Of a DNA stretch of 64,000 nt, positions 19,901 through 41,150 are shown piece after piece. Origin of the DNA: Nageia nagi (taxonomy: Eukaryota; Plantae; Pinophyta); NCBI GenBank assembly GCA_050084985.1, contig JBITNC010000001.1, positions 126,232,001 through 126,296,000 on the forward strand. Direction: 5' to 3'. The position numbers and the translations under genes were made by a program. Each line of letters opens with the position of its first letter. Position 1 is the stretch's first letter. The notes beneath the pieces were generated by a model. The model was given only the letters and a program-made list of their open reading frames with translations. It did no database searches and was not told where the DNA came from.

Positions 19901-21750
19901 CAAATAGTAAGCGGAAACAATATATGATATTGTGAATCAACTACTAAATGATATAGGTCTTCCTTTTAGAAACTTGATAGATATTTCTACAGATGGGACT
20001 TTAGTAATGATTGGACATGAGAATGGTTTTGTTTCATTTTTAAAATGATAGTGTGCAAATCTTACTGTAATTCACTATATAGCTTATCGTGAAGCTTTGG
20101 CAATAGTAGATGCTTCTAAGAATATACTTGAATTATTATTTGTTAAAAAATACCAAACAAAGTGTATTCTTGGGTACAAAATTCATCAAAGAGAACTAAT
20201 GAACTTAATAATTTACTTAAACTCATGCAAATTGATGTATTGGATGTTTTACAAATCCATGCAGTTAGATGGTTATCTAGGGGAGAGGTTATAATAAGGC
20301 TTGTGAAGCTTATGCCAACTCTTTTAACTTTATGGAAAAATGAGAAAAAATGTTCTTCATGGTATGGTAAAGCATGCATTTACTCTTTTATGTTTTGTTT
20401 ACATATGTTTGCTGATGTTTTGAATGAATTGAATAAGTTGAATATCACATTCCAAGAAGAGAATCTCGATATTGCAACTCTTGGATTGAATCTTGAGCTT
20501 CCAATAAGTATATTATTTAGATGGTTTTTTAAAAAGATACATTTGCAAAAGGTATAACCTATCTCTCTAAATTTTTTAGTTGATTCACAACATGGGTATA
20601 TTGAAATTGAACAAGAAGAAACAATTATTAATAAACATGATTTATATTGTATCAAGTTATTCCTATAAGGGATTAACTATAGTGATGGAAAAAAACAAAG
20701 TATAAGACCTTGTATAGAAGGAACTTTTGAGAGCTATCAAAACTCATAGAGGACTATATTCAATCTCTCATATATTGTTTAAATACAAGATTTCCAAATC
20801 TTCCTCTTTTCAATGAAGCAAAACTCTTCAACCCATGTTATTATCCACCAAATTAGAAAGATTGAGAGCGTGTTACTGTACAATGGCATGATAGATTCTT
20901 CAACATTTGCAACATACCATTTTAGATGTATCAGATTTCCACCTTCATTTGATGTCAAAGCTTCTCAGATTGAGTTATCCTCTTTTTTTTTATTCATTAA
21001 ATTCTTCTTTTGAATGTTACTCAATGAAGGCTGCATGGAAAGTATTTCGTAACAAAGACATACTAACTATTCCAATAAGTGCAGTGGATTATGAAAGGGG
21101 TTTTTCTAGACAAAATATTATCAAGGATACTAGAAGATCAAAACTTGGCATAAATACTTTAGATGCATTGATGAAGATATCATTAAATGGACCAAAGATA
21201 TCTTGAGTTAGATTAGAATGCAATATATAAGATACGGATAAATGAAAAGTCCATAAGAGTTCTTGATCTTTATCCATTAACCTTCTCTTTATATTTTAAT
21301 ATTGATATTTTTCTACTTAGTTTGAATAAGAGTTATTCTAATTTTTTTTTTTTATCATTATATCCTCAAAGAACACTCATGTTTATATTTGGTTCATTGC
21401 AGGTCTATGAAGAGAAGTGAACTTGAAGGAGATAAAATTTCAGACACAAGACTTTTTTAAGTCAATTTGAAACATTCAATATATTTTTTATATTCAAAAT
21501 GAACTCAAGAACAAAAGCTTTCGATCTTTTATAAGTTTATTGTATGGTTGAATAAAATATCTCTATATATATTTTAAAAAAAGTTATTTGCATGCATTAT
21601 TTTAATCCCATATTATTTTTATTTATTAAATTATAATGATTTATTGAAAGGTTATTAAATTGTATAAAACGTATATTGAAAGGTGTTTAATAATCAAAAA
21701 CGTAAAAAATAAAATTGACAGGTAGAATTTTTTTTGAAATTCTAGGCCTG
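16903..21750 (+). mobile_element. hAT DNA transposon, complete ends (4848 bp)
   Basis: TIRs CAGCCCTGGAATT / CAGGCCTAGAATT (11/13); perfect 8-bp TSD GTCTCGAC at 16895-16902 and 21751-21758; internal transposase remnant. Confidence 0.95.
18996..21206 (+). pseudogene. hAT transposase (ZNF862/Tip100-like), disrupted
   Basis: W..RFEWL and MKCKHC zinc-finger region, FSIMI(K)ESTD, STDG, degraded CxxH, VRWLSR, and dimerisation motif TIPISAVDYERGFSRQNIIK..RSKL..LDALM.ISLNGP. Confidence 0.88.
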
Positions 21751-21758
21751 GTCTCGAC

Positions 21759-22455
21759 ATTAAAGGATGTCTGAAGTTGGAGAAAAATTTAAAATTTTAT
21801 TTAGTCAACTGAAATTCCTTGGTTTTCATACTTTTCCCGAGTCTAGTCTTTTCTAAATCGCCGAATTGACCGGTAGAGGTAGAAAGCATGGCGGTCCAAG
21901 GATGATCAATATTTCTGTAGATCATAGCGTATAGTGCAAGTCGACCAACATTCATATGTTGGACAAGATGGTCAATAAGCCAATAGATTTTCGAGTTGCA
22001 CAGATAGTGAGTCTTGATCCAAGGATGCCAAATTCTATACATTATCTTATTCATACCGTCTCTCGTTTCATTCGTAGACGATTGAATTGGTAACGAAGAA
22101 TATATTATTATATACATTGATGTGAGGAAAGAGAAGTAAGTAATTTTTCGTATGATAACATTATGTTTGTTGTCACATTTTTATAGTTTTAAGATGGTAT
22201 GTTTATATTGATGTTTCAAATCATTTTTATTTTGATGGAGTTTTTGAATTATCATTTATTAGTTGAAATTATAAGCTTTTATTTTATATTTGTTGTTATA
22301 TGTATGATTATATTGATGTTTCAATTCATCTATATTTTGATGGAATTTTAGATTTATTATTTTATTTAGTTTTTCAATTTATTATTTGAAGATATGGACT
22401 TCGATTTTATATAAAATATAATTTAAAGATTTGTTAAGATAATGGTATGATGAAG
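21759..22455 (-). promoter_or_regulatory. displaced promoter of RLP copy 2, with three W-boxes
   Basis: Directly adjoins the RLP 5' region once the hAT is removed. W-boxes at 21803-21808 (-), 21866-21871 (+) and 21970-21975 (-). Conserved with 11520-11890. Confidence 0.7.
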
Positions 22456-22799
22456 TGAATTTATATATCATTTTAACTTGAAATTTAGCATGGAATAAAT
22501 ATTTTTGAATAATATACAAGCATAATTAAATTAAATATTAAATTCTATGTCAGATCACACAAGCTAGTTGGGGTTATTAGAAGAATAAAAATAGAAATAA
22601 ATTCTATTTGTGTCATATAACTAGTTATGTTTCTCTTTGGAGATAAACATGTTCCAATAATTAAGGAGTTTATCAACCTTGAAGGGATTAGAAGGATCAT
22701 AGAGAGGTGAAATATTAAATGCAACCTTAAACGGTATGGTAAGAATGTTTAACTAGATCATGTGAACCTACCATGGTATGTTATAGAACTCTCTTAATT

Positions 22800-23417
22800 T
22801 AGTATAAACTTTCTTCAAAGTAATAATCAAGGAGAGTACACTTCAAATGAGTTTCAAGAATATCTTCTTTGATAAAGGATAAAACATCTGGTGATATAGT
22901 TTTGTATAATCCACAATAGAAGGTTATATTTACAAGGATAAATTAAGCAATCATTATCATGGTTATGGTATTGTTATTTTTTTAAAATATAAAATCATAT
23001 ATTGGTTTGATGCAATTCTATGTATATCATGCATTACAAATAAATTTATATTGTTAGCTCTCTGAAATAATATTCCTTATTAATTATGGTATGGTTGTAC
23101 TCCATTGTTGAAGTAACTCATATTTTTTCCACTTATTATTGTTTATTTCTTAAGGAACAGAGCAATAAATTAACTAAAAGGCCTCAAAATAGGACTTTTT
23201 AGGAGCATTCAAATAAATCCAAATCATGCCATTTGTATGATGAAGTCAATAATAATCTCATAATCTCAAGAGATATCATCTTTTATGAAATTTTAAATAT
23301 GAGACCATTATTAAGTGCAAACTAGATTACATCAATATGTTCACCATAGTGAAGATATATAATGGATTTCATGAAGCAATTATAAATATTGAGAAGGCGA
23401 TCCTTATCTCAGATTAT
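22800..23417 (+). mobile_element. decayed Copia integrase (left half of the host of the Sola2-like element)
   Basis: GEYTSNEFQEY (22831), LWYG and IISRDIIFYE remnants. Confidence 0.7.
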
Positions 23418-23445
23418 GGGTGGGTTCAAGAAGTTGGTTCCACTT
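23418..23445 (+). repeat. left TIR of the Sola2-like element
   Basis: GGGTGGGTTCAAGAAGTTGGTTCCACTT; reverse complement of 39225-39252 is GGGTGGAAGAAAGAAGTTGGGTCCACTT. Confidence 0.88.
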
Positions 23446-25489
23446 TGAGGCCAAAAAGTAGAGTATTTTTCTTAATTTTTAAGTTTGGATATGATTGATC
23501 TCAAAATTTGAAGCACTTAGACATGGAATCATGAAAAAAATCACTGGGGTGACAAAGTAGTCCTTAGAGTTTAGTTTTCAAATATATAATTTATTCCAAT
23601 ACCCAAATCATAGAATTTAAAATTTGATAAGATGAATAAAAACCACATTAAAAAAAAACCATTTTTGGACCATACCATGCACATGTCCATCATGTATAAT
23701 TTGATTGAAATCAAGGTATTTTTTAAAATCCTTTTAGAAAAATATACCTAAAATATTGGAGCTTGTCTTGGATATTTTTTCATCAATAATTTTTTTAGTA
23801 ATTTTTGTATCGGGAATGTTTGTGGTTTCAAAAGTGCTCATGTTTGTCATAAATAATTTGATCTAAACTTAATCTTTTTTCAAAAAATAATTCTTATAGA
23901 GAATTTGTGAAGATTGTTTCTATATTTTTTTCATAACTTCGAAAAAAAAACTTATTAAGAAAATACAAGACCCTCATATTTCAAGTATATGGACCAGTAT
24001 CATAAAAAATTAATAGAAAAATATAAAATGTACTCCAATTGTAAAAAAAAGTACATATTTCAATTTGTCACTCTTTCATCTAAAATGGGTTTCAGTTTCA
24101 TGAAAAAATCCAATCAAAATCACCATGAAATATATGCCCGAAGTTATCATTATGTAGTGAAATAAACCATGGACATTTACTTATAGGTCCAAGGAAAAGG
24201 ATTGGCTCACCTAGCCTTTTTCAAGACTAAATTTGAGATTGGTGGGTGGGGGCACATGGGAAGTAAATTTTGAATATATCGAGATGTCAATATATCATGA
24301 TCCTGATATGTTCTAGCCATTATACATATCGAGATCTTGATATTTATTAATACATTAGAATAAAAAATCAACTTCTTGGATAGATATGTTCTTTGCATCA
24401 TTCTCTTTCCATTCATATAATATGATTTAATATAGAAGATAGTTATACTTTTTGTAGGAATTAAGTTGCTTTTGTCATATGCATGCACCTTATTCAATCA
24501 TTATACTGAGGTTGAGACTTGAGGAATCTATTTTAGTTGATTTGAGGCTAAATTAAGTTTTTTTTTGAAGAGAATTAAGGTTTTGAATCCTCAAGCAACC
24601 ATTGCAATTACAATTTTCTTTTGAAGATATACAACATTGAATTTGTAAACTTGAAAGTTAATCAACATCATGGGTGATAAAAAATGGCAAATAAGGAGAG
24701 AAAGGAAGGTCATGTCATCTAAAGAAATTTTTACAAAAAGAGAGAAGGATGCAAAATGGAAAAGTGAAAAGAGCACAAAATTAAGAACCGAATTGTAATA
24801 AAGCATTTGAATGTTCCATCCCAATTAAAGAGGAGGATATTGAAGAGAACTTGAATGTATACATGATTGTAGATGATGCATGCATTGAAAAGGAGAATGC
24901 ACCATTGATTGAAGCTTCAAATTCAATGACTATGGAAATAAAAGCAACTGTGTCTTTGAATCTTTACATGATGCTTTTATAATTTTAGGTGCTTTTCAAC
25001 ATTCTCATGGAAATTCTTTAAATGATTGAGAAATTATTTAATTAATAAAATCCTCTTCAAATGATCATGTATTATTGATTAGGATTATTACCACTTTTAA
25101 AAGTTCCTTCCATATACTACTTGAAATGACACCTCTAGCTCTTGTTTATACTCCTACTATTAGAGTTATTCTTAGAATTTGCTTGTACAACTACTAAATC
25201 CTATAGATAATCGAGTTATTTCACACCCCTATTAATTATCTTAAGAACCCTAATTATGAGAATTACTAATAATGCCTTATATAAGATATATCATAATATA
25301 TCCAAAACTGTTTACTAGATATATAGTTGAATGATTTCTTCTCACAAATACATAGGAGATTATTATGACCATTTGACCAATGGGTTTGAAAACTTTACCA
25401 AAAAATCATTTGTAAGACCTTTAAAAATCTTTATAGAAGTGAATAAATACATAGATAAGTCTTTTAATATCCTTTTTAAACTCAATTAT

Positions 25490-28375
25490 ATTGTAGGACC
25501 TATCAAAGTGTATCCAAAAGTATTTAACAAATATATAGTAATCTAATTATTTTTCACAAACAAATAGGATAGTACTATGAAAACTTACTCAAAGCTATTA
25601 AACATTTTGTAAATAAGGTTAGACATTTAACCAATGGGATTACTTAGGTTTAGGGTTTTGGATTTATAGTTTAATAGTTAAGGGGTTAAATATTTTAAGG
25701 ATTTCTTAGGTTTAAGAATTCAACAGTTAAAGGTTGAATATTTTAAGGGTTTGGGGTAAAGAGTTTAAGAGTTTAAGGATTTAGGATTTAAGAGTTGAAT
25801 TGTTTAGGGGAAAGGTTTTAGAGTTTAGAGTTTAGGGTTATAGGGTTTACATTTTACTCTTTACATTTTAATGATTATAGGGCTTAAGGGTTTAAGGTTT
25901 ATGTTTTAGGTATTTAGAGTTTAGAGTTTACAAAACTTGTAGGTCCTATCAAGGTTTGGACAACAAGAATAAACATTTTACCAATAGGGTCAAACATGAT
26001 GTTAAAAGGGTTAAATAGTTTAAGGGTTACTTGGTTTTAGCAACATAAGGGTTAAGGGTTTAAGAGCTTAACAATTTATGGCTTAAGGGTTTAAGGTTAA
26101 GGTTTTAGGGGTTTAGAGTTACAGGTTTTAAGGGTTTAGGGTTTAGGTTTATTTAAGGCTTAAGGGTTTAGGGTTAGGTTCTAAGGGTTTAAGATTTAGA
26201 GTTTAGAGAACTTGAAGGTCCTATTAGGTTTTTCTAACAAGGTTAAATATTTGATCAATGGAGTCAAATATAATGTTAAAGGGGTTAAAGAGTTTAAGGG
26301 TTACTTAGGTTTAATAACTTAAGGTTAAAGAGTTTAAGATTTTATTGGTTTAGGGTTTAGGTTCTAGGAGTTTAAGGTTTTAAGGGTTTAGGGTTTAGGT
26401 TTGTTTAAGGCTTAAGAGATTAAGGTTTAGGTTTCTAGGGTTTAAATTTTAGAGTTTAGGGAACTTGTAGGTCCTCTCAAGGTTTGGTCAATGTGGTTAA
26501 ACATTTGACCAATGGGATCAAACATGACATCATTTAAGGGGTTAAAGAGTTTCAAGGTTAGGTTTAAGAACTTAAGAGTTAAGGGTTTAAGAGTTTAGCA
26601 TTTTATGTCTTAAGGATTTACAATTTAGGGTTTTAAGTGTTTAGAGTTTAGGTTTATTTAAGATTGAAGGGTTTAGGGTTTATGTTTTAAGGGTTTAGAG
26701 TTTTTAGTTTAGGGAACTTATAGCTCCTATCAAGGTTTAGCTAACATGGTTAAACATTTGAAAATTGGATTCAAACATGATGTTAAAGGGGTAAAAGAGT
26801 TTAAGGGTTACTTGGGTTTAGGAACTTAAGGGTTAAGGATTTAAGACTTTAGCATTTTATGGCTTAAGGATTTAGGGTTTAGGTTTTAAGGGTTTAGGGA
26901 ACTTGTAGATCCTATCAAGGTTTGATCAATAGGGTTAAACATTTGACCAATGGGGTCAAACATGATGTTAAAAGAGTTAAAGAGTTTAAGGGTTACTTGG
27001 GTTTAGGAACTTAAGGGTTAAGGATTTAAGAGTTTAGTGATTTAAGGCTTAAAGATTTAGGGTTTAGAATTTAGGTTTTACATGTGTATAGCTTAGAGTT
27101 TAGGGTTTTAAGGGCTTAGGGTTTAGAGCTTAGGTAACTTGTAGGTCCTATCAAGGTTTGGCCAATAGGGTTAAACATTTAACCAATGGGCTTACACATG
27201 ATGTTAAATAGGTTAAAGAGTTTAAGGATTACTTGAGTTTAGAAACTTAAGGGTTAAGGGTTTAAGAGTTTAGTGTTTAGGGCTTAAATTTAGGGTTTTA
27301 AGGGTTTAAGGTTTATGTTTTTTTAAGGCTTAAAGGTTTAGGGTTTATAGTTTAGAGAGCTTGTAGGTCCTATCAAGGTTTGTCTAATGGGGTTAAACAT
27401 TTGGCCAATGGGGTCAAATATGTTATTAAATGGGTTAAATATTTTAAGGATTACTTGGATTTAGAAACTAAAGCATTAAGAATTTAAAATTTTAGTGGTT
27501 TTGAGCTTAATGTTTTAGGGTTTAGGGTTTAGATTTTTTAAGTCTTAAGGGTTTAGGTTTTAAGGGATTAAGGTTTAGAGTTTAGGGAACTTCTAGTTCA
27601 TATCAAGGTTTGACCAATGGGGTTAAACATTTAACCAATCATATCAAACATGATGTGAAAGGGGTTAAAGATTTTAAGGGTTACTTGGGTTTAGGAACTT
27701 AAGGGTTAATGGTTGAAGAGTTTAGCAATTTAGGGCTTAAGGGTTTAGGTTTTAAGGGGTTAGGGTTTACAATTTTAAGAGTTTAAGGTTTATGTTTGTT
27801 TAAGGCTTCAAGGTTTAGGGTTTATGTTTTTAAGGGTTTAGGGTTTAGAGTTTATGGAAGTTGTAGGTCCTATAAAGGTTTGGCCAACAAGGTTAAAAAA
27901 TTGGCCAATGACATAAAACAAGATATTAAAGGGGTTAAAGAGTTTAAGAGTTAATTTTATTTAGGAAATTAATATTTAAGAGTTTAGGGCTTAAGGATTA
28001 ATAGTTTAGGGTTTACAGTTTAGGTTTGTTTAATTCTTAAGGGTTTAGGTTTTAAGGGTTTAGGGTTTAGAGTTTAGGAAACTTGTAGGTCCTATAAAGG
28101 TTTGGCCAATGGGGTTAAACATTTGACCAATGGGGTCAAACATGATGTTAAAGGGGTTAAATATTTTAACAATTACTTAAATTTAGGAACTTAAGGGTTA
28201 AATGTTTAAGAGTTTAGTGGTTTAGGGCTTAAGGTTTTATGTTTTAGGGGTGTAGGGTTTTATGGATTTAAGGTTTAGATTTATTTAAGGATTAAGGGTT
28301 TAGGGTTTTTATGTCCTATCAAGGTTTGGCTAAAGGGTCAGTTAAACAAAATTTAACCAATGGGATTAAACATGT
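25490..28375 (+). repeat. satellite array, ~11-12 units of 185-275 bp: conserved ~75-bp core plus degenerate TTTAGGG tracts
   Basis: Core CTTGTAGGTCCTATCAAGGTTTGGCCAATGGGGTTAAACATTTGACCAATGGGGTCAAACATGATGTTAAA begins at 25936, 26211, 26464, 26717, 26902, 27138, 27360, 27590, 27860, 28082 and ~28306, with degenerate copies at 25490-25640. Confidence 0.93.
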
Positions 28376-28646
28376 TATGTCTTATAAACTCTTTAATTCT
28401 CTTCAAATTAGTATAAGAATATATGTCACATATAAAATATATATATTGATTGCTTAAAGTTTAAAATTTTCCTTGAGTTTACATAATGCCACTATATATT
28501 TGTTACTTAATTTCTTAAATTTTAACTAACTATTAGCTTAATATTTTATTAACTTCCCAAAAATAACTAAACAATTGTTGTATGTTACATTTTTTTCCTT
28601 TGTAGTAAACTTTTGTGAGCCAAACATTAACCTTGGAGTATGAACT

Positions 28647-31342
28647 ATGGACACAAATCCAGATATGTCTTCAAATCCACATGTTAATGATATTGATAAT
28701 GAGAATATTAATAATTCTGATGATATAGATATTTTGTATGTATTAAATGTAATATATTAAATAATGTTCCTAGTATTATATCTATGAGATAAATAAGAAC
28801 AAATGCAAATAGAATATATGATCAAATGTTTCTTAATAAGGAGCTAGGATTTTAACATCAACTCATGTTATAATTAATGAGAATATCAAAAATGAGAAGA
28901 GTAATGAAACATTTAGGTGTTTATATGAAAAAAGAGGAACCCTTGAAATAAGTTATGTCCATTATTTCTAGTGCCATAGACTCTATTAAGAAGAAGGGTC
29001 AAGCTATATATAAGAATGTAGCATGACGAGCCATAACAATTGCTTTAGTAAATAGATCAACTGCAAATAAAAAGATTATTAGTAACCTTATTGGATATCT
29101 AAATATACATTTTAAAACTTTTTAAAGATATTTAAAAGGAAGAAAGAGTATTGAAATTGATCCAATCAACCAATTTTGGAGTTTTAGTGGTAGACTTCCT
29201 AGGTTTGGCAGGAAATGGACTAATGAGATAAAATGCATAAATGAAAAATATTGGCATGATCATACAAGGGAATCTCCTAATATTAAAGATGTTTTAAAAA
29301 TATCATCAACATAAGCATGCAAAACACTTTTTACATATGAGTCAAACTCAATTGTACAATAAATTTGTAAATGATAAAGTGTTAAGTACATTTAATATTA
29401 GCCTAAGTCAAATATAGTTTGAGAAATGCAAACCTTTGTATGTTTGGATTCACAACCAAAAGATAAAATGTTGTTGTAAAATTCATATGTGATTTAGATA
29501 TTATTATCAAGTTTTTTTGACATATATGTTGTACTTTACATATTAACAACTTCATATAGGGATGTGGTTTTAATATTGCACCTAAATCTATCAATATGTT
29601 TATAGTAGGTTTATTTTGTCAAATTCCAAATGGTGAATCATTTTATTCAAATGCATGCATTTTTTAACAATGTAGTATATGTGGTAATGTTTCTTTTTTA
29701 GGATAATGTGTGCATGAAATTAATTTATATGATTTTGGACAAACATTAGTGGATCTAAAAAAATTCAAAAATATTGAGTATGCATTAAGGAATGGAAAAA
29801 CTAGGAAGCATGTTGATCTAATCATTAAAAATGTTAGTGTACATACATTCATAGAAAATTTTAAGAGTAAATTTATTCCAAAATATGTGAAACATTCCCA
29901 ACATGCTCAATGGCTTAATAGTGAATTTTGTTAATGTAGAAACACATTTCTATATGGAACTATATTATTAGTTGTAGACTTTGCAAAAAATTATACTCTC
30001 GCACCATAAGAAAAAATTTAGTCTCAGTATTATAATTCTCAATAAGTTTCCATTTTTATTTATATCATATATAGACATGTATATGATAGTACATAATAAA
30101 CTAGAAACATTTTGAGGGAGTACCATTTTTATATGAGTGATAATTGATTACACTCATCAGAGTTTATTTGATTTTTGTTTAATATATTTTATAATAATTT
30201 GAATGAAGGAAATATTCAAATAGCACAACATTTGATATAGTTAGATAACTCTATGGGATAGTTTATTAATATATGTATGTATTATTTATTAAGTAGGATG
30301 CATAGAGAATACAATATCCAACATATATGGTCTCTTTTTTAAGCTGGACATGGTAAAGGTGAACTTAATGGAGCTAGTGCATGTGTGAAAGGAGTTCTTG
30401 CTAAATAATAACTTCAATTTTTAGATTCAATAAAATTTCAATATGCATGTGCAATTATGGATTTGTGTAATACAAATATATCTACTAGATTAAGAGAGAA
30501 TTCTACAATTTGATGATTCTTTTGGTTAGTTGAAGAAAATAAAATTACAAGTCATCATGATTGTGAGATAATTAATGGATCAATGAAATGACATTCATTT
30601 AGGAGGTCAAATGTAAACACATAGACTATTTGGATAAGGAAGCTTCCATGCTTTTGTGATTCTTATATTCTCAATAAATCATAAGCATGTGTAAATACAA
30701 AATGGGTTGAGGAATGGAAACAAAGATATTTAACACTTATTGAATCACATGATCAGTAAGAAATATTCATTGAATACAAGAATCAATTATTTATATTAAA
30801 GGTCTATGATCGAGTTTTTGACCCTGTATAAGAAGGTAATTTAATATAATTTTATTTTCTTTTCCTTTTTTTAGTTTATTTATATGAATGCTCATTTTTG
30901 TATATATATGAACTAATTTTATATGTTGCACTTCATTGATATAAATTTGATTTGTAGGATGTGTATGTTGTTATGGAACCTAAGGGGAATGAAGTAAAAT
31001 TAGAGTATTGGTTAACTCAATGTTTTAAGAGAAAATATAAGTTAACTTATCCTTGATGTGATCATGATGGAGTTGAGTATCCAATAGGTTTTATGGTGGA
31101 TTTTTGGCACATAAATAAAATAAATAATATCAAGAAGGAATGATTTGGGAGCATACAAAGATTGTGAAGTAAATAATAAAAATATTCATTATTCACATTT
31201 GATACTACCAACAAATATTAAAAATCTATATATAAAGGGAGGCCTTGTTAATAAAGTATCATGGAAGATTTTAATGCAAGAACATAAGGCAATTATGAAT
31301 GAATTACATGAAAGAGAGAATGCAAATAGTATCAAAGAATAA
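28647..31342 (+). pseudogene. Sola2-type DDD transposase, two coding exons, disrupted
   Basis: FEKCKPLYV (29418), CCCKIH (29469), VVDFAKNY (D at 29977), SQYY, MSDN.LH, I*LDNSMG*F (D at 30244), AGHGKGELNGASACVK (30349; third D appears as N), RKLPCFC (30640). GT-AG intron at 30836-30957. The start position is a guess. Confidence 0.8.
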
Positions 31343-31362
31343 AAAATACATGTAAGTTTATT

Positions 31363-31491
31363 TTCCCTTCTTCACTCCCCTTCATCCTCCACTTCCCCTT
31401 ATCCTTCAACCCTTCATATTCACTTCCCCTTTGTGTTCTACCCTTTACCCCTTCATATCCATGTCCCCTTCCCCTTCACCCCTTCACCTCA
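31363..31491 (+). repeat. C-rich CCCCTTCA-like low-complexity tract
   Basis: About a dozen degenerate CCC(C)TT(C)A units between the transposase stop and the tRNA-like sequence. Confidence 0.8.
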
Positions 31492-31564
31492 GTTGTCTTA
31501 GCTCAATTCGTAAAGTGTGTGACTTTTAACCATATTGTTGTGGGTTTGTTTCCCATAGGTAGAA
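31492..31564 (+). tRNA. tRNA-Lys(UUU) pseudogene
   Basis: GTTGTCTTAGCTCAATTCGTAAAGTGTGTGACTTTTAACCATATTGTTGTGGGTTTGTTTCCCATAGGTAGAA matches, by recall, plant cytosolic tRNA-Lys(UUU) with mostly C>T/G>A changes; anticodon TTT at 31525-31527. Confidence 0.8.
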
Positions 31565-32339
31565 TAACTTTCCTAATTATATTCAAGTAAACTTTTTTTT
31601 ATTTACTTAATTATCAAGCAAGAAAAAATTTGTATTTACTTATTCTTTTCTAGGATGTATAAAAGTTTGTCAAGATATAAATATATCAATTATGCATTTA
31701 AATAATTAAGATCCATGCTAAAATCATCAAAGCTTATTTTAGTTATCTCACAATAATTATAAACTTGTAAACTTGTTGTTTAGTAATATATATTTTAAAC
31801 TATAGTAGGTGGATTTTATTTTAGTTAAGAAGAATAAAATTTGAGTGGATTTTCCTTTAGTTACGAATAATTTACCAATAATGGGTGCATAGGTAAAAGA
31901 AATAAAATGTGATATGCTAGAGGGAATGGCATTTGATAAGGTAGCCTATATGGAATATTATGTTAACAAGGATAGGAAGTATGGAATAGATGAGTCTAAA
32001 GAGGGAACAAAGGATTTAACCACAACTTGATATTGAAGGACTAAGTGACTTGTTATTAAAAACATGTGAGGGAACCTAAGGGTATTTGAGACACATAAGG
32101 AAATGGATGAATATGAATAAATTTGATACAAAAAGGATCTTAATAGATGATTTTTAAACAAAAGTAGCTCATAGGGGAGTTGACATCATCAAATATTTTC
32201 TTACCATAATTATCAAGTATTCCTCTTGGATAGGACATTTGTGTTGCTTCTAATATGGCTTCCTATGTTTATGTTTTAACTTATTTTCTAAGAGAATCTC
32301 CTACATGATAAGATAACCAATAGATCCCAATTTAGTTTA

Positions 32340-33085
32340 TGATCAACAATTGTAAATTTATTATTATTATAGATAACATTTTTAATTATACTTATTGTTG
32401 TTATAGTTATAGATAACATGCAATTATGTGTGAGAAATTCATAGGCTTTGGTAAGTATAAAAATGTATTTACATGATTGACGTTTGTAAACTTGTTGTTA
32501 TAGATAACATTTGTAATTATACTAGTGATTATACTTACCTTTGTAATTATACTTGTTGTTGTTATAGTTATAGATAACATTTGTAATTATATTTATTGTT
32601 TAATAATATATATTACAACATTTATAAACTTGCAAACTTGTTATCTAATTATCTTGTAAACTTGTTATTTAATATTTACTTATTGTTTAGTTATTAGAAC
32701 ATTTGTAAACTTGAACATTATCTAAAAATTATTAATCCTATAATTATAATTTTGTGAAGGGATAAAGATTGTACATAAAGAGAAAGATGAAAGGGAGATA
32801 AAAATACATAACAACATTATAATCATTGTGTGAAAGATACATAATAACATAACAAAATTGTAATCATTATGTGAAAAATACATAACAACATAATAATAAC
32901 ATGTGTCCAAAGTCCATGTAGTCCATGTAATAATAGCATCTATTCCACAATAACAGTGTCCAAAACCCACTATATAACAATGTCCAAGTTCACAATATAA
33001 CAATGTCCAAAGTCCACAATAATAACATAGCAAAATCATAAAAATAATATCCAAAGTACAAAATAATGTCCAATGTCCATATACA
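32340..33085. repeat. short dispersed/tandem repeats between the two convergent transposon genes
   Basis: Recurrent TTGTTATAGATAACATTTGTAA-like units (32340-32720) and ATAACAATGTCCAAAG-like units (32890-33080). Confidence 0.7.
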
Positions 33086-33149
33086 TATTTCATGATCTAC
33101 AACTATCATACAAAACTAAGAATTGCAAAATTAATCCTAGATCTATCTA

Positions 33150-35124
33150 TTTAGGACTAGATATGTCTCCATCATTGATCCTCCTCTTCTTTTCAACTAA
33201 CGTAGATGCCCTATGATGTATAACACAAATAAACATAATTTAGTGTATATTATCATTTATATTTGTAATTATTTTAAATATTTAATAAATTAAATTTAAT
33301 TTATCTATAAGTTTTAAAAATACATATAAATATTACCATATCATGCTGCTAAGATCCTCCCTCAATAACTATATCATGTTGTGCAAATGATGTATTAATC
33401 TCATCAATATGAAATGCATGAGAAATAGCATCTTAAAAGATAAAATAAAGAACAATTGAATAAAATAAAAGGTTTTTAAATAAATATAGATTTTTAAGGC
33501 CTACAAATTGCATACATATGCATTAATATGAATGTATAAAATTACCTAAAATAAAGTAGAAATATGAATGAAAAATTGTGGAGTGGTGGATGCTAAATGT
33601 TGAGCCATTGGCATGCCCTCTTATCAATTGAATATGGCCATTTTAGGATGAACATCTACCTAGAATATGAATTTCATTTTTTAGCATACACATTCAAATT
33701 CACATATTATCTAACAAAATTAACATGGAATTATTTATGACCTATAAATTGCATAATATATGTAATAATGAATTTTAAAAAATGAAATAAACATCTACAT
33801 GACAACTTGTGGAGTGGTAAATACTGAAGGCCTAGCCATCGAGATGCCCTCTCATCGGTTGAATGTGGTCATCTCAGAATGGACATATACCTAGAATAGA
33901 AAAATATTTTTCAGCATACACATGTGCATATTCATATGTGAATAATATCTAACAAAATTAACATGGAAAATGTTAAACTTGGTATATTTATTTACCTCAT
34001 AATGTGTGCCAATAGATCTAGGATTCAGTGTCATAAAAGCTCTATGAAATGCACCTAAAGTGGAGGCTCCCATTGTCTATGATAAAAATATAAACACACT
34101 AATTCAAATTAAATTATAAGTACACATTACATACATTAAACGTACAAAAAATATGTAAAATATACCTCTCTCCTAGGAAGGTTGACATAGTCCATTGACA
34201 TTATCTTTGTACAAGATATCTTGTGATCAATTGAAGAGTAGCCAACACATATACTACTATAACTTTAGCAAAAATAAGATGCAAGTACACTAATTCTAGC
34301 ATTATTTCTAGGCTCACTGATATTAGCTACCAGATGGGTAGCTTGTTTAGTGCGAGTTTGGGTCACCTGAATCAATGATTCCAATGCCAAAATAACTACA
34401 TGATGAAAAGCTAGGGTAGGAATAGGAGAAGGAGGAGAGATGAGTGGTGTAGGATACATGGGTCAACCTATATTAACCCATTCCTTAGGTCTATTTTTCC
34501 ATGTGCCATGACTAATACCTTGATTATGCCTCATGTCAAAATAATTGACATATTTTCTTAACACACACTCAACATATATTTTCTTAAAAAAATATAGAGG
34601 GACATCAAAATTGGAATGTGGTGGTTTATCACACATTATCCACCATCAATCCTAAAACGTTTTAGCTATCATATGATGGGTGCACAAATCATAAGGAATT
34701 ATTTCTTTATTATATGGGATGGGTTTCCAGTAGATGGATTAATGAAGTTTGGAGCAAGGGTCTCTTTAAGAATACCTAAATTATTTACCTCTCAAGTGGA
34801 GAGACCATCTAAATAATGCCCTCTCATGAAGTCTCTCCATGCCTCGAAACCATACATATCCCCATCAAAACTCCTAATAGTATCAACTTAAGTTTGCATC
34901 AAATACGTAAACTATATAACATGGATTGGGGAATTACAAATACTCTAAATGTGATGCATTTTTTCTTTTAATTGATTAATATCATGAGCAATAGCATCTC
35001 ATAACTATTGTTCATCTACAACTATAGGTGGGGGTAGAGGGGGTGAATTTTGGGGGATTTTTTGGTTAAGTTTATCTAATGTCTCATATATACCATGATA
35101 AAATTCATGAGATGACTCATCCAT
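33150..35124 (-). pseudogene. spliced second gene of the Sola2-like element, unknown family
   Basis: Long degraded frame from ATG 35124 (MDESSHEFY..PPLPPP..GFEAWRDFMRGHY..WWIMCDKPPHSNFDVPLYFFKKIYVECVL..PTPLISPPSPIP). GT-AG introns at 34165-34077 and 33995-33891, with further small exons downstream. Confidence 0.6.
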
Positions 35125-38100
35125 GATTATAAAAAGGCACTTGTAAACATTTGAAATAACATAAAAATAGAAATAAATTGAATTTAAATTGGATAATAAT
35201 AGAACAAATTGCATTACTTATAAATTGGATATCACATGTTTGACTAAAAAACTATCATATAACAACATTCCATACATATTTATCCATTACCAAGGTCCTC
35301 ATTTTAATGTTCTAATATTTATAGTCAACTTCATCAACCTCAATGATCTGAAAAGAATTAATGTTGTTGGACATTACATAAAAATAATAATAAACCTATA
35401 GAAGAACTCAAAAAATAATTTAAAAATTTATGAACAAGTCTACACATGTGAATCTAACCTTCCAACTAAAAAAATACCTGATATCAAATAAATATTATAA
35501 ATCGAATAATAGAATACTAAATCATAATACATAACTATGATAAAACATACATGAGATTAAAGTAGTGTATAATAGAATGAATTAGTTATACCAAATCTAC
35601 CCAAATATGGATAAATATTGTTGGAATCTATACAAAGAAAGCTTCCTAATAAGATTACATGCATAAGAAAAAGAGTTATAAATTTCATAATATGTAAGCT
35701 CTAAAAATTATCATCTTTCTTTATTAGAAAAAACTAAAATGTACAACAAAAAATAACATGGGTAACTTGGATCAAAAATTGGTTTCTTTATCTTAATCAA
35801 ATTCAAATTTGAATAAACTACATGAAATATATAAGATTACATGTTAAACACATCAAATATTGTATTCTCCTATAGTTACATTGTAATGAATGTCTTACAC
35901 ATTGTCATTATTTCATTAGAAAATTATATAAATTGGGAAAACTATATTATAATGTACAAAAATAGTTACAAGAAGCTAAACATGCCTAAGATGATGATAT
36001 GAGATGTCATATATATGTTACAAATGTGCATAAAGGTTCTTTAACAACTTCACTTTCCAATAACTTTTCATAGTCATCTATAAGAGTGGAGGTTTTTTTG
36101 TATTCCTTATTTTGCTTACCATATGCAATTAACTATGCTAGAGATATACAACGTTACTTATAATTATCATTTCTAAAAAGAATACTCATATTGGAGTGAA
36201 TGATTATTTGGTATTTCATCTTGAATATGTTTTTTATTTTAAACTAATAGATATATGATTATTTACTTAGGTAGTAATTATATTAGTCATCATATACCTT
36301 AGTATACCTCTTTTCAACTTTTCCTAATGTGAAAAATATTTTTAGGAAAACTATCCTAACCACATGAATAATGAGCCACATTGAGCTCAAATTAAGTCCA
36401 TACTAAAGTATATCATGATGATTGAGAGCATGGAGATATTTGTGATCTAAATTGGTCATGTTGATCAAGATAGATGAGAGATTTAGAATGGCTACATAGA
36501 GTAGGATTTATCCCTAAAGGAATAATCTAGTGGAAAATTACTCATAATACATGTAATGTTACCCAAATGGTTAATTAATATCTATAGTTGTTTAATATCT
36601 ATAGCCACCTTATTACTTTAAACTAATATCTAGAGAAGGACATTATATAAAATAGAAACCTTGTTAGAAATATTATAATAAATAGGAGTACAAGAAGAAA
36701 AAAAGTTTCTCATTCCTTGATTTTCAAATATTAAAAGTATGCCAATGTAGAACAAATTTCACTCCTCTATAAATGAGTATGGGAATCCTTAAGTATCTAA
36801 AAGGAGGCTTTGTGACTATGGGAACTAATTAAGAAAGAAATATTGAAAATAGACTAATGCTAGTAATTATAAGCTCCCATACAACTTCAAAGTAGATGTT
36901 TAACATCCTTAGGAGCATGAAAAAAGGGATATAAGTGATTTTAAATATCCATGTGTTTAATATGGTTACCTAAGGGTACACTATGAGTGAAAAGGATCCA
37001 TGGAGAAAATGGTTTTTTTTGGTTGTAAGTAGGTATCCTTAAACCAATCATGAAAGCCATTGCTCGAAAATCCACCCAAAATTTCCCTTAGTTTCCTAGA
37101 TTTGCCTAACTACCCTTAGTTGCCTCTTAATTTCCCATTATTACTACCCTTCATTATCTCTTAGTTTCCCATAACATTGATCCTATATATAGGATCAATT
37201 TTGGACTCTTTATAACTCGTTTAGATCCATTAGTAATCCACCATGCCATCCAAATTACCATACTTACATTTTTCTAATCTATGATCTATTTATACTAATT
37301 ATATACAAGTTATCATAATGTTTCCTATTAATATTAAGTCATGTATAATTATCATGATATTTGAATATTATATTATTCTCCTATCACCTAGTCATTGTTA
37401 TAGCATCTTATCAAAAAATATGTTTACTTTTAAAGGTTTAAAATAATTATTTGATATACCAATTAGTTGCCACATGTAGTTGATACACCTATTCACTGTT
37501 ATAGCATCTTATCAAAGAATATGTTTACTTTTAATGGTTTAAAACAAGTAGTTTATATACCAATTTTTTAATCTTTTTGTTGCTTCAAACTTGAAATGTG
37601 TTGTTTGGTTACAAAATCTAAATAGAGGCCTTCTAGGTTAGATTTATGACCTAAATACTACCCTCCCATTATTATTCATTTCTTGATAGGGAACCTCATC
37701 CCCTCAGTTGGGTTTCAATTTTATTTATCTCATATTTATCCTAAAAGGTGACATTTATGTTAGTAGATAAAGGCCTTCTAGGTTAGGTTTTTCATTTTTA
37801 TTTATATCATATGATTATAATTTTGTGAAGGATAAAGATTATATAGAGAGTAAAATATGAAGGGGAGATGAAAATACATAACAACATTATAATTATTATA
37901 TTGAAAAAAGTGTCAAACCTGAAGGAGAACTACGAACTTAGCTTGGAGTTGAATTTACTTCAAAATAGGATGAAGTGTGATCTAATAATTTATTAAAAAA
38001 TTAGATATTGATCTTAGTTTTATCTTTGAATTCTTCTAAAATTTATTTTGGGGTATATTTTATATTGAAAATGATGATCTCCATACTAAATATTCTTAAG

Positions 38101-39224
38101 AATATACTATATGATATCTTATTATTATAATTTTACAAAGGGATAAAGATTATATAGAGAGGGAGAGATGAAGGGGAGATGAAAATACATAACAAAATTA
38201 TAATTATTATACAAAAAAAAGTGTCAAACCTCAAAGAAAACTATGGAATTAGGTTGGAGTTCTCATAGGTGTTAGTAACTAGCAAAAATAATTTATCTAA
38301 ATAGGAGCACATATAAGGCTAGGAATAATTATATCTTTGTAGCTAGTGTAAACAACTAGAATTTCACCACCTCAAAGTGGGGAAGGATATGATTTCAGAT
38401 TTCTATTGTTTAATACTATATATTTCCTATTGTAGCTCTTCAACTAGCATTGCATGATGATAATGGTATTCAATTCTTTCGTTATGTTGAAATTGGGATA
38501 TAATTCTATTATTTTTATTGATTGCTTTGTAACATATTGGATCTAGTTTGTTTTTCTATTTCAATTCTACATGTGTTCTCAATGTTACTTATACTCCATT
38601 CTATTTTTTTATAATTTATATTTTAGTTATGTTTTATTTATTATTTTCAATAACAAGGCCAAATTCTAGTTTTTGTTGTTGAAGATGTGAAGTTGCAACT
38701 TGTGACTAAGAACAAAATAAAGGTTTCTATTTTCAATCTTAATGCATTCAATATTAATTTTCTTGAAAGAATAAAGGAAACAATTTAATAGTAAAAAATG
38801 GATTTTTTAACTAAGAAAAAAATAGAAGGGTTCTAAAGAACACATACAAAAAAATATGATATTTTAACCAAAACAATAGTGGCCATGATGCTCAAACTAA
38901 CCTAGATAATGTGAGGTAAATTTAATGGTAGAAGTTGGTAGGAGGACCATTGAAATTGGGATCCTAAAAACTTAGGTTGCTAGTTCTAGGGTTGGTTAGG
39001 AGTACAAGCCATGGAGCTAGAAAATGAGATTCATGACCTGCATCATGGTATTTAAGTTTTGCAAATTGATATATCAGGATCCCAATCTAGGGTCAATTGA
39101 TGAGCCCATGTTGAGATCCCAATATCTCGTAGGACCAAGATCTCCAAATATACGAATCCTAATTTATTTTATATTGGATTCCCAATTTTTTTGACCTCAA
39201 AGTTTTACTCCATACTTCCTCTTT

Positions 39225-39252
39225 AAGTGGACCCAACTTCTTTCTTCCACCC
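39225..39252 (-). repeat. right TIR of the Sola2-like element
   Basis: AAGTGGACCCAACTTCTTTCTTCCACCC followed by TTAT. An extra subterminal match: 39188-39203 vs 23442-23457 (15/16). Confidence 0.88.
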
Positions 39253-39256
39253 TTAT

Positions 39257-41150
39257 ATTTTATAATCTACACCTAAAATTTGTAAGGAATACCCCTCATA
39301 GCTTGAAAATACATTTGTTTCCTAAGATTAAGAATATATATATTTTGGGTGATGTGATAGGTAGGATTAAAAAGGTTGATTATATATGGAGCTAAAGCAC
39401 ACCACAACCCATATATAAACTTGGTCTATCAAATATATTTCTAAAATGGACCATAAAATACTTGAGAGTGTTCATGTACATCAAATGAGGAAAATAAGAA
39501 CTAATAATTACTATTAGTTTGGATAGGAATAAAAAGAATTAAAAGAATATCATTCCAAGTATGAGGATGAAATAAATAGTGATGTATTTGATATTAAATA
39601 TTCATATAATTATAATTTGAATTTGCCTTAAGATTGAACATCTACTTCCTTCAAAGAAGTAGTAATTTAGAATACATGGAAGGGTGTGATATTAAAGAAA
39701 TTTGATATACTCTTCAAGAATGAGATATGAAGTTAGTTGCTCCTCTGTATGGAATGAAACCAATATGTTATAATTTATCTATAAAGTAAAGTACAAATCA
39801 AATATCTCACTTGGTAAACAAAGTATGAGTCTTTTTACAAAAGAAATAACTCAAAAAGAAGGAATTGACTACAATAAGAGATTCTACATTATAAAGAAAT
39901 GGACTATTGTTAATACTTTATTGTACTAAGTTGTTAGCTAGATATGGATCTAAAATTCAACATATAAATGTAAATATAAGATTCCTAAATGGAGATCTAA
40001 AGGAGAATTTGTACATGATTGAACCTAATTTTTTTCTATGAAATAATAAAAATATAAAGTCTACATGTTAATAAACTCATTGTATGGTCTCAAACAAAAT
40101 CCTTGCACTTCATGCATGAAGTTGACTAAACATATCATAAAGATCAATTTACAACACTTTCATTTTCATGATGTAACACTTTTTTATCAAGAAATCTAAC
40201 ATAATTGTTGCATATTTTCTATTTTATGTTGATGATATTTTTATTAGTTGAAAAAAATGAGGGTATATTTTCAATCAAAGAATAATTAAAGAAGTATTTT
40301 AAAATGATAGATATGGGTTATCATTATTACTACTTAAAAATTGAAATCACATAAAATGCCAAGTGTATCTCATATGTCAATAAAATTGAATTGATTATTT
40401 ATTTGATAGATTAGAAACCAAATATTGTAAACCTATATGAATTTTAATGAAAAAGAAATTAAAGCTCACATAAAAAGAACTAGAATATTTTGAAGATATA
40501 AAAAGAAACAAATTTTATGTTGATGAAAGTTTTGTTAATCTCATAATAATATGTACTTTCATGTTCTTTAATTTTAAATTCCTTTTCTAATGCACCCTAT
40601 GAAGGTTATTTGCAAGCAAAAAAGTGAATTCTTTATTGCTTGAATGAAACACAAAACCCTTGACTCGTATTTGAAAAAAAAACTTCTAATCAATTAGTTA
40701 TTTAGACTTCAACTATAATGGAGATAAATAAATTAAGAAATCATGTTAGAAATTCTCAAGAATCTTGGATCAATAGTAATCTCTTAGAAATGATGAGAGC
40801 AATTAGTTCAAATAGATTTGTATGTGGTAGCTATAGAAGAAAATAAATATATAATTTAACTCATGCATTTTAAAAAATTTATAGGAGAAATAAGTCAATT
40901 GTTTTTAATTGATAATGGATAACACTTTTGCAATAAAGTTTGCTAAGAATATAATATTTCACAATTGAATAAATCACCAAAATATAATCTAATTTATAAT
41001 ATTGTAAGTATTAAAAATATATAGTTAAAGCATTATTACATAGATGACTAGATAGGATATATCCTTATCAAAGTACATGAAAGAGAAACTTTCAAGATAA
41101 TTATGAAAATTCTTAGGCTATAAGAACCCTTTAAAATTAGGAGAGAACTA
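39257..41150 (+). mobile_element. decayed Copia RT/RNase H (right half of the host element)
   Basis: YKVKYKS, QKEGIDY (39850), FLNGDLKE.LYM, KLIVWSQ/LYGLKQ (40080) and YVDDI (40225) remnants. Confidence 0.8.

Follow-up and report, generated by a model that had tools for sequence, protein, structure and literature searches.

The interval from 23418 to 39252 in a 64,000-bp stretch of Nageia nagi DNA (contig JBITNC010000001.1, hereafter the window) raises three questions: whether these 15.8 kb are one transposon, to which superfamily it belongs, and whether it represents an undescribed system, as was held in the original prediction of a cargo-laden DNA transposon of the Sola2 type. Very probably it is an old and now dead Sola2 DNA transposon, and the streptophyte lineage to which it belongs is abundant in gymnosperms. 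The Sola superfamily itself reportedly goes back to Bao et al. in 2009.

The transposase gene that carries this assignment is a relic. From 28.6 to 31.4 kb all reading frames are broken, and the stretch that could be aligned contains no fewer than 18 in-frame stops as well as two frameshifts; in the original prediction the broken frames were named as the reason why the gene escapes a list of open reading frames (ORFs). Homology was traced from the longest clean piece (29707-29931, 75 amino acids [aa]), with which an exhaustive HMMER search returned 14 short relatives at E-values down to 2.5e-17. The sequence cluster of one of these fragments held a protein of 471 aa (P0024), and a search with this protein led to full-length proteins of 600-660 aa and to one protein of Taxus chinensis. 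A profile search yielded 321 relatives of the transposase. Those with names derive from the streptophytes Klebsormidium nitens, Ceratodon purpureus, Calypogeia fissa, Cryptomeria japonica (LOC131074642) and T. chinensis (KI387_026096), and from animals, namely the bivalves Mya, Mytilus and Argopecten and the sea anemone Actinostola. When full-length relatives were compared with the window by tblastn, positions 29015-30483 were covered in frames 2, 3 and 1, together with a remnant of the C-terminal domain at 30958-31315. Identity to the relatives P0025, P0027 and P0034 was 35-40% over approximately 310 residues (tblastn E-values 1e-47 to 1e-62). The window contains one copy only of the gene by tblastn.

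The family was aligned in two sets of 18 (A1) and 48 (A2) relatives. Invariant or near-invariant residues are H193, D221-F-A-E-N, E233, Q235, S305-D306-G307, Q311, K313, H342-G-K and D348; the three aspartates D221, D306 and D348 (the DDD triad) are invariant or nearly so in the 48 relatives. The motifs singled out in the original prediction as those of a transposase (DFAKNY, xDN and GHGKG with D replaced by N) fall on the catalytic positions of this alignment. DFAKNY begins at 29977 and is the counterpart of DFAENY in the family. The second aspartate is retained at 30244-30246, within LDN (30241-30249), where the family reads WSDGCAGQFK, and GHGKGELNG, beginning at 30346, is the counterpart of GHGKGEHDG, with the third aspartate changed to asparagine at 30367-30369. 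The DDD triad and an RNase H-like fold are accordingly found in the family, not in a working enzyme at the window locus. The window copy cannot mobilise itself.

The fold was assessed on the AlphaFold model of the relative P0040 (mean predicted local distance difference test score 88). Residues 202-400 of this model, which include the three aspartates, superimposed on retroviral integrase cores with Z 10-11 and a root-mean-square deviation of approximately 3 Å over 145-160 residues; the Z-score of the core against the IstA transposase was 9.3. Plain Foldseek against the PDB gave weak rows only, all of them RNase H-fold nucleases, and a sequence search of solved structures gave no match. The family transposases end in a beta-rich domain (GDxFAV…YYLxxC…; residues approximately 500-630 of P0040), to which the remnant at 30958-31315 corresponds. 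A part of the P0040 model, whose position in the model was not given, matched a polybromo BAH domain in Foldseek (probability 0.90, 115 columns). This part is suspected to be the beta-rich C-terminal domain, which may then be a chromatin-reading module. Extra domains were seen in two relatives, P0116 (697 aa) with a match to an OTU-like cysteine protease (PF02338, E 9e-7) and P0201 (K. nitens KFL_005820050, 1180 aa) with leucine-rich-repeat Pfam families; either true domain fusion or the merging of neighbouring gene models may lie behind them.

Pfam gave no family, either for eight full-length relatives or for 40 stop-free pieces of the element. In a survey of fungal transposons, Sola, Zator, Kolobok, Novosib, Academ and Dada are listed as being without Pfam models. 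The superfamily was decided by a published alignment in Majorek et al. 2014 (PMC3985635, supplementary file 5), which shows the RNase H cores of the Repbase elements Sola1-1_AP, Sola2-1_HM and Sola3-1_HM. The core of Sola2-1_HM reads GDFAE-NYTFVVQDEIQSYHW … QCSLHPLVIYY … CFISDDITHD … FTDGCAGQ-YKNCKSFYNLC … WNFFATSHG, that of Sola1-1_AP FDLEK … YSDNCGGQNRN … ERGHTQS, and that of Sola3-1_HM KDYCQK … KSDNASSYHGN … EPCRGKD (PMC3985635). Compared by eye, the blocks of Sola2-1_HM coincide one by one with the invariants of the family, and the relatives P0108 and P0114 are nearly identical to it; cores of the Sola1 and Sola3 types disagree with these invariants. The blocks GDFAENY, QDExQSxHW, ISDDxxHD, DGCAGQ(F/Y)K and SHGK, as well as the DDD triad, are common to the family and to Repbase Sola2 (Sola2-1_HM, from Hydra), with which the window element also shares a 4-bp AT-rich duplication and, apparently, short terminal inverted repeats (TIRs) that start with G. 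On these grounds the Sola2 identity proposed for the element is upheld. That the resemblance is false and the transposase belongs to another superfamily lacking a Pfam model (Sola1, Sola3, Kolobok, Academ or Zator) is exceedingly unlikely: the want of a Pfam model and the 4-bp AWWT duplications that Sola1 also produces would agree with it, but Kolobok targets TTAA, and the Sola1-1_AP and Sola3-1_HM cores misfit the very blocks that Sola2-1_HM fits throughout. The catalytic motif strings had no match within the literature text searched.

The limits of the element were examined together with its flanks. Of the 28 positions in its terminal arms, 23 are complementary between the two, and the tips read GGG..CCC; a degenerate pattern for the pair occurred at just these two sites in the window and never in 100 dinucleotide-preserving shuffles. 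Immediately outside the arms the same four bases, TTAT, are found on both sides. The left flank (23203-23322, + strand) has a weak SH3_retrovirus match and the right flank (39895-40196, + strand) weak RVT_2 matches. In Copia pol the SH3_retrovirus domain comes after the integrase, and the strand and order of the two flanks fit Copia pol. In silico excision of the element with one TTAT placed the integrase tail (IISRDIIFYE) and the motifs of the reverse transcriptase (RT), KQSMSLFTKEITQKEGIDY and SLYGLKQNP, in one reading frame, the RT motifs lying approximately 215 codons from the integrase tail. If the element was inserted once and four bases were duplicated, Copia should be rejoined in frame, and the frame observed fits this prediction. 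The 4-bp AT-rich duplication typical of Sola2 is thus present in this one copy, as TTAT with in-frame flanks. The 28-bp inverted repeats, the exact TTAT duplication and the flanks that rejoin as Copia integrase followed by RT had all been claimed for the locus, and each was recovered here. Approximately 2 kb upstream of the Copia/Sola2 nest, a 103-aa open stretch (20895-21203, + strand) matches the hAT C-terminal dimerisation domain (PF05699) at 21.3 bits against a cut-off of 21.4 and indicates a hAT transposon relic.

Abundance was estimated from Logan contigs of four public runs (X1-X4; four coded organisms, two studies), which were placed on positions 21000-25800 at a likeness of at least 80%; the word depth so obtained adds up the contigs and should not be taken for a copy number. 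Depth is approximately 4-36 over 21805-23414, with approximately 12 for X1 in the bin 23254-23414, and rises in the bin 23415-23575 to approximately 135,000 (X1), 155,000 (X2), 25,000 (X3) and 28,000 (X4). Up to 24219 it remains at 10^4-10^5 in X1 and X2 and at approximately 4,000-32,000 in X3 and X4, and beyond this position it is approximately 10^2-10^4 in all four runs. The step shows that the left tip is the genuine boundary of a repeat present in extreme abundance in several related organisms, while the drop after 24219 means that most copies share just the terminal 0.8 kb or so. This block is probably shared with short non-autonomous derivatives. The consensus of loose contig ends before 23462 (GTTGGGTCCACTTTAAGGCC) has a G that is also found in the right arm of the window copy. 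The commonest read differences are G>A and C>T (with A>G), and the G+C content is approximately 27% across the element (21-41% per 2-kb bin over the whole window); low G+C content and transition bias fit methylated repeats that have decayed heavily through deamination. One of the data sets that contain this sequence is an air metagenome, in keeping with a plant whose pollen is dispersed by wind.

The restriction of the hyper-abundant part to the first 0.8 kb or so, and the lack of long subterminal similarity between the two ends, could also be read to mean that the TIRs belong to a different, abundant short element and that the Sola2 relic merely lies between two such ends, in which case 23418-39252 would not be one transposon. 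This is very improbable. Two independent insertions would each have brought a duplication of their own, but the element is bordered on either side by the identical TTAT, and removal of exactly one unit restores a continuous frame in the Copia flanks. Moreover, the TIR pattern occurs just twice in the window, and between the two ends lies a single transposase of a superfamily known for 4-bp duplications.

Three points weigh against the interpretation as a single Sola2 copy. The match to Sola2-1_HM is a by-eye reading of a printed alignment. The right end is defined by the TIR, TTAT and the in-frame flanks alone, with mismatches at 5 of 28 TIR positions and no longer subterminal repeats; comparison of the element with itself revealed no long subterminal inverted repeats joining the two ends. 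Read depth supports the left edge only, and paired ends with a 4-bp duplication are known from one copy.

The position of the window copy within the family was taken from a quick maximum-likelihood tree of 37 rows, in which the copy was represented by its single-frame catalytic part (29572-30483) with X at stops. It forms a group with Cryptomeria LOC131074642 and the environmental sequence P0016 (Shimodaira-Hasegawa-like approximate likelihood ratio test [SH-aLRT] 99). This group nests in a clade with Taxus (SH-aLRT 99), which in turn lies inside an all-streptophyte clade (99). The Actinostola sequence is the sister of the streptophyte clade, and the bivalve sequences are placed, with unnamed sequences resembling Sola2-1_HM, across the midpoint root. 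Because the window row is odd in composition and sits on a long branch, no more than its coarse placement is to be trusted. The tree points to a streptophyte lineage of long standing, represented by a charophyte alga, a liverwort, a moss and conifers, and nothing in it suggests that the lineage was recently imported from animals.

By analogy with the family, the history of the locus may be pictured as follows. The DDD transposase of an active relative would bind the G-started TIRs, excise the element and insert it at a TTAT in Copia pol, whereby four target bases would be duplicated. The enzyme would be built around a core resembling RNase H and retroviral integrases, with its aspartates in DFAENY, SDGCAGQFK and GHGKGxxDG, preceded by a Cys/His-rich region and followed by the beta-rich domain. 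Since then the copy has decayed, as the stops, the frameshifts and the exchange of the third catalytic aspartate described above show. The features of the element are summarized in Table 1.

Table 1. Features of the Sola2 element and its target site in the window (positions count from the first base of the window)
Feature	Position	Strand	Remarks
Target-site duplication, left copy	23414..23417	.	TTAT, identical to 39253-39256
Left terminal inverted repeat	23418..23445	+	5'-GGGTGGG start; GGGTGGGTTCAAGAAGTTGGTTCCACTT; 23/28 match to right arm
Hyper-abundant left terminal block	23418..24219	+	Depth pattern alike in four runs
Satellite	25680..28375 (approx.)	+	About 10 units of 185-275 bp; degenerate TTTAGGG-like stretch and unique core with TTTGACCAATGGGGTCAAACA
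Decayed Sola2 transposase gene	28647..31339	+	From tblastn of relatives; start 28647 is the figure of the original prediction
CT-rich minisatellite	31378..31488	+	Periods 31 and 39 bp; directly upstream of tRNA-like sequence
Decayed tRNA-like sequence	31492..31564	+	UUU (Lys-type) anticodon loop; T-run about 30 bp downstream
Internal tandem duplication	33478..33968	.	About 250 bp, 72% identical; inside the second-gene span of the original prediction
Second, convergent reading frame	34268..35126	-	Pieces 35010-35126, 34466-34645 and 34268-34462; model of the original prediction extends to 33150
Right terminal inverted repeat	39225..39252	-	CCACCC-3' end; reverse complement GGGTGGAAGAAAGAAGTTGGGTCCACTT
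Target-site duplication, right copy	39253..39256	.	TTAT

Besides the transposase, three further parts had been taken as components of the element: a satellite, a tRNA and a second, spliced gene. The TTTGACCAATGGGGTCAAACA motif of the satellite occurs 12 times, all within the array, against 0 expected by chance. The tRNA stands in part. A tRNA-like sequence lies approximately 150 bp beyond the end of the transposase remnant and passes the Rfam model RF00005 narrowly (32.4 bits against a gathering score of 29), but its acceptor stem is broken and ARAGORN called no tRNA; it is a tRNA pseudogene or the head of a short interspersed element (SINE). The second gene was likewise confirmed as a reading frame only. 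Positions 34268-34645 of the minus strand form a real conserved frame, with one relative, P0280 (98 aa, from another assembly), that is 74% identical and reads through the stop by which 34466-34645 and 34268-34462 are separated in the window. No Pfam domain was found in this frame, and its 60-aa piece, like the 75-aa transposase piece, scored only approximately 0.77 in the ESM Atlas. A reading of the frame as a retrotransposon gag-like domain, from a FDG…W…F pattern, found no support from Pfam or from tblastx against the rest of the window and was rejected. No further piece of the remaining element matched a Pfam family. In the right half, a sequence of 93-148 bp is present in three direct copies (32735-32827, 37804-37950 and 38114-38261) with 84-86% identity.

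The odds are near even that the lineage carries the satellite, the tRNA-like sequence and the second frame as built-in parts, as against later additions. It is tentatively conceivable, at somewhat less than even chance, that the gymnosperm Sola2 elements form a distinct multi-part lineage, in which the transposase is preceded by a telomere-like core-plus-spacer satellite and followed closely by a tRNA-like pol III unit and then by a conserved convergent second gene, with very many short derivatives that share the 0.8-kb block. About an even chance is given to a composite origin, in which a Sola2 core of a few kb was enlarged later by expansion of the satellite, by insertion of a SINE or tRNA pseudogene and by insertion or capture of an unrelated frame, so that the cargo is no feature of the lineage. 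Such an origin would account for the T-run behind the tRNA-like sequence, as in a pol III unit or SINE head, and for a relative of the second frame that occurs elsewhere with nothing linking it to a Sola2 element. It also agrees with the depth in the four runs, which differs by two orders of magnitude when the terminal 0.8 kb is compared with the 1.6 kb that follow and implies that most copies do not have the interior in full, and with intact relatives on metagenome contigs that share nothing with the non-transposase parts. On the other hand, the element contains no foreign transposon or retroelement gene detectable by Pfam, and no nested element with its own flanking duplication was seen, although no systematic search was made.

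The metagenome relatives (L001-L009) are on contigs that end before recognisable element ends, and comparison with the non-transposase parts of the window element revealed nothing in common. L003 and L004 are 99.7% identical and differ by 1,140 bp downstream of the transposase (L003:4645-5784), present in one only, either as an insertion/deletion polymorphism or as a nested element. The gene there runs on in further open stretches past an ORF of 618 aa, so the protein is longer than 618 aa and probably spliced; on the metagenome contigs, downstream exons were seen after P0026. In L008 and L009, L003:243-608 is fused directly to L003:3036-3288; this internal deletion takes out most of the transposase, as it would in a non-autonomous copy.

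Comparison with the literature did not support the idea that the system is undescribed. A review of plant transposons gives most Sola elements as 2-9 kb long, with some above 15 kb, and as uncommon in flowering plants, and the sacred lotus paper reports Sola as absent from the angiosperms analysed. Among conifers, the genome paper of Cryptomeria japonica tabulates 56.7 Mb (0.6%) of DNA/Sola-2, second among the DNA transposon classes, and a 2026 preprint on Cupressus sempervirens ranks Sola2 first in abundance among class II superfamilies. Among named relatives, the Cryptomeria protein is nearest to the window transposase, a Taxus protein belongs to the same clade and the family is highly abundant in the host. 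The Sola-2 annotated in conifers is presumably the same family as the window element. The conifer annotations differ in that they are table rows from automatic classification and provide no termini, duplication, satellite, tRNA-like sequence or second frame. Gymnosperm Sola2, even at 15.8 kb, is an already known kind of element, whereas the anatomy of the plant elements is not described in the literature located. None of the Sola2 descriptions in that literature has the architecture of satellite, transposase, tRNA-like sequence and second gene.

Compared with Repbase Sola2, the plant proteins form a well-supported clade of their own, apart from the animal-type sequences resembling Sola2-1_HM, and the window copy is dead and 15.8 kb long. 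A second unrelated gene is also known from Sola2-Fanzor chimeric elements (Bao and Jurka 2013), where Sola2 is characterized by 4-bp AT-rich duplications and short inverted repeats. These dictyostelid elements (families DFa and PPa) resemble the window element in being Sola2 of at least 7 kb with such duplications and with inverted repeats of 12-21 bp. They differ in their ends, which read GAG or GAA … GCTC, against a 28-bp repeat with a GGG..CCC tip in the window, and in their passenger, a TnpB-like Fanzor protein, whereas the second frame of the window has no detectable domain. The original prediction gives the termini of Sola2 as GRG. Sola1 and Sola3 belong to the same Repbase superfamily and have 4-bp duplications and an RNase H-like core as well, but their printed core motifs mismatch the window family, and Sola1 ends in GAC or GGAC.

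Since Sola2 is already listed in conifer annotations, the window element is a well-documented example rather than a new kind of system. In reviews, plant Sola is documented mainly from a moss and is rare or absent in flowering plants, and the conifer papers give a table line only. The locus supplies a checkable anatomy for the gymnosperm lineage, with exact ends, a duplication, catalytic residues, nearest relatives and the extreme copy number of the terminal region, which is useful when repeats are annotated in the giant genomes of conifers. Should conservation of the additional parts be established, this would point to a two-gene Sola2 system worth study.

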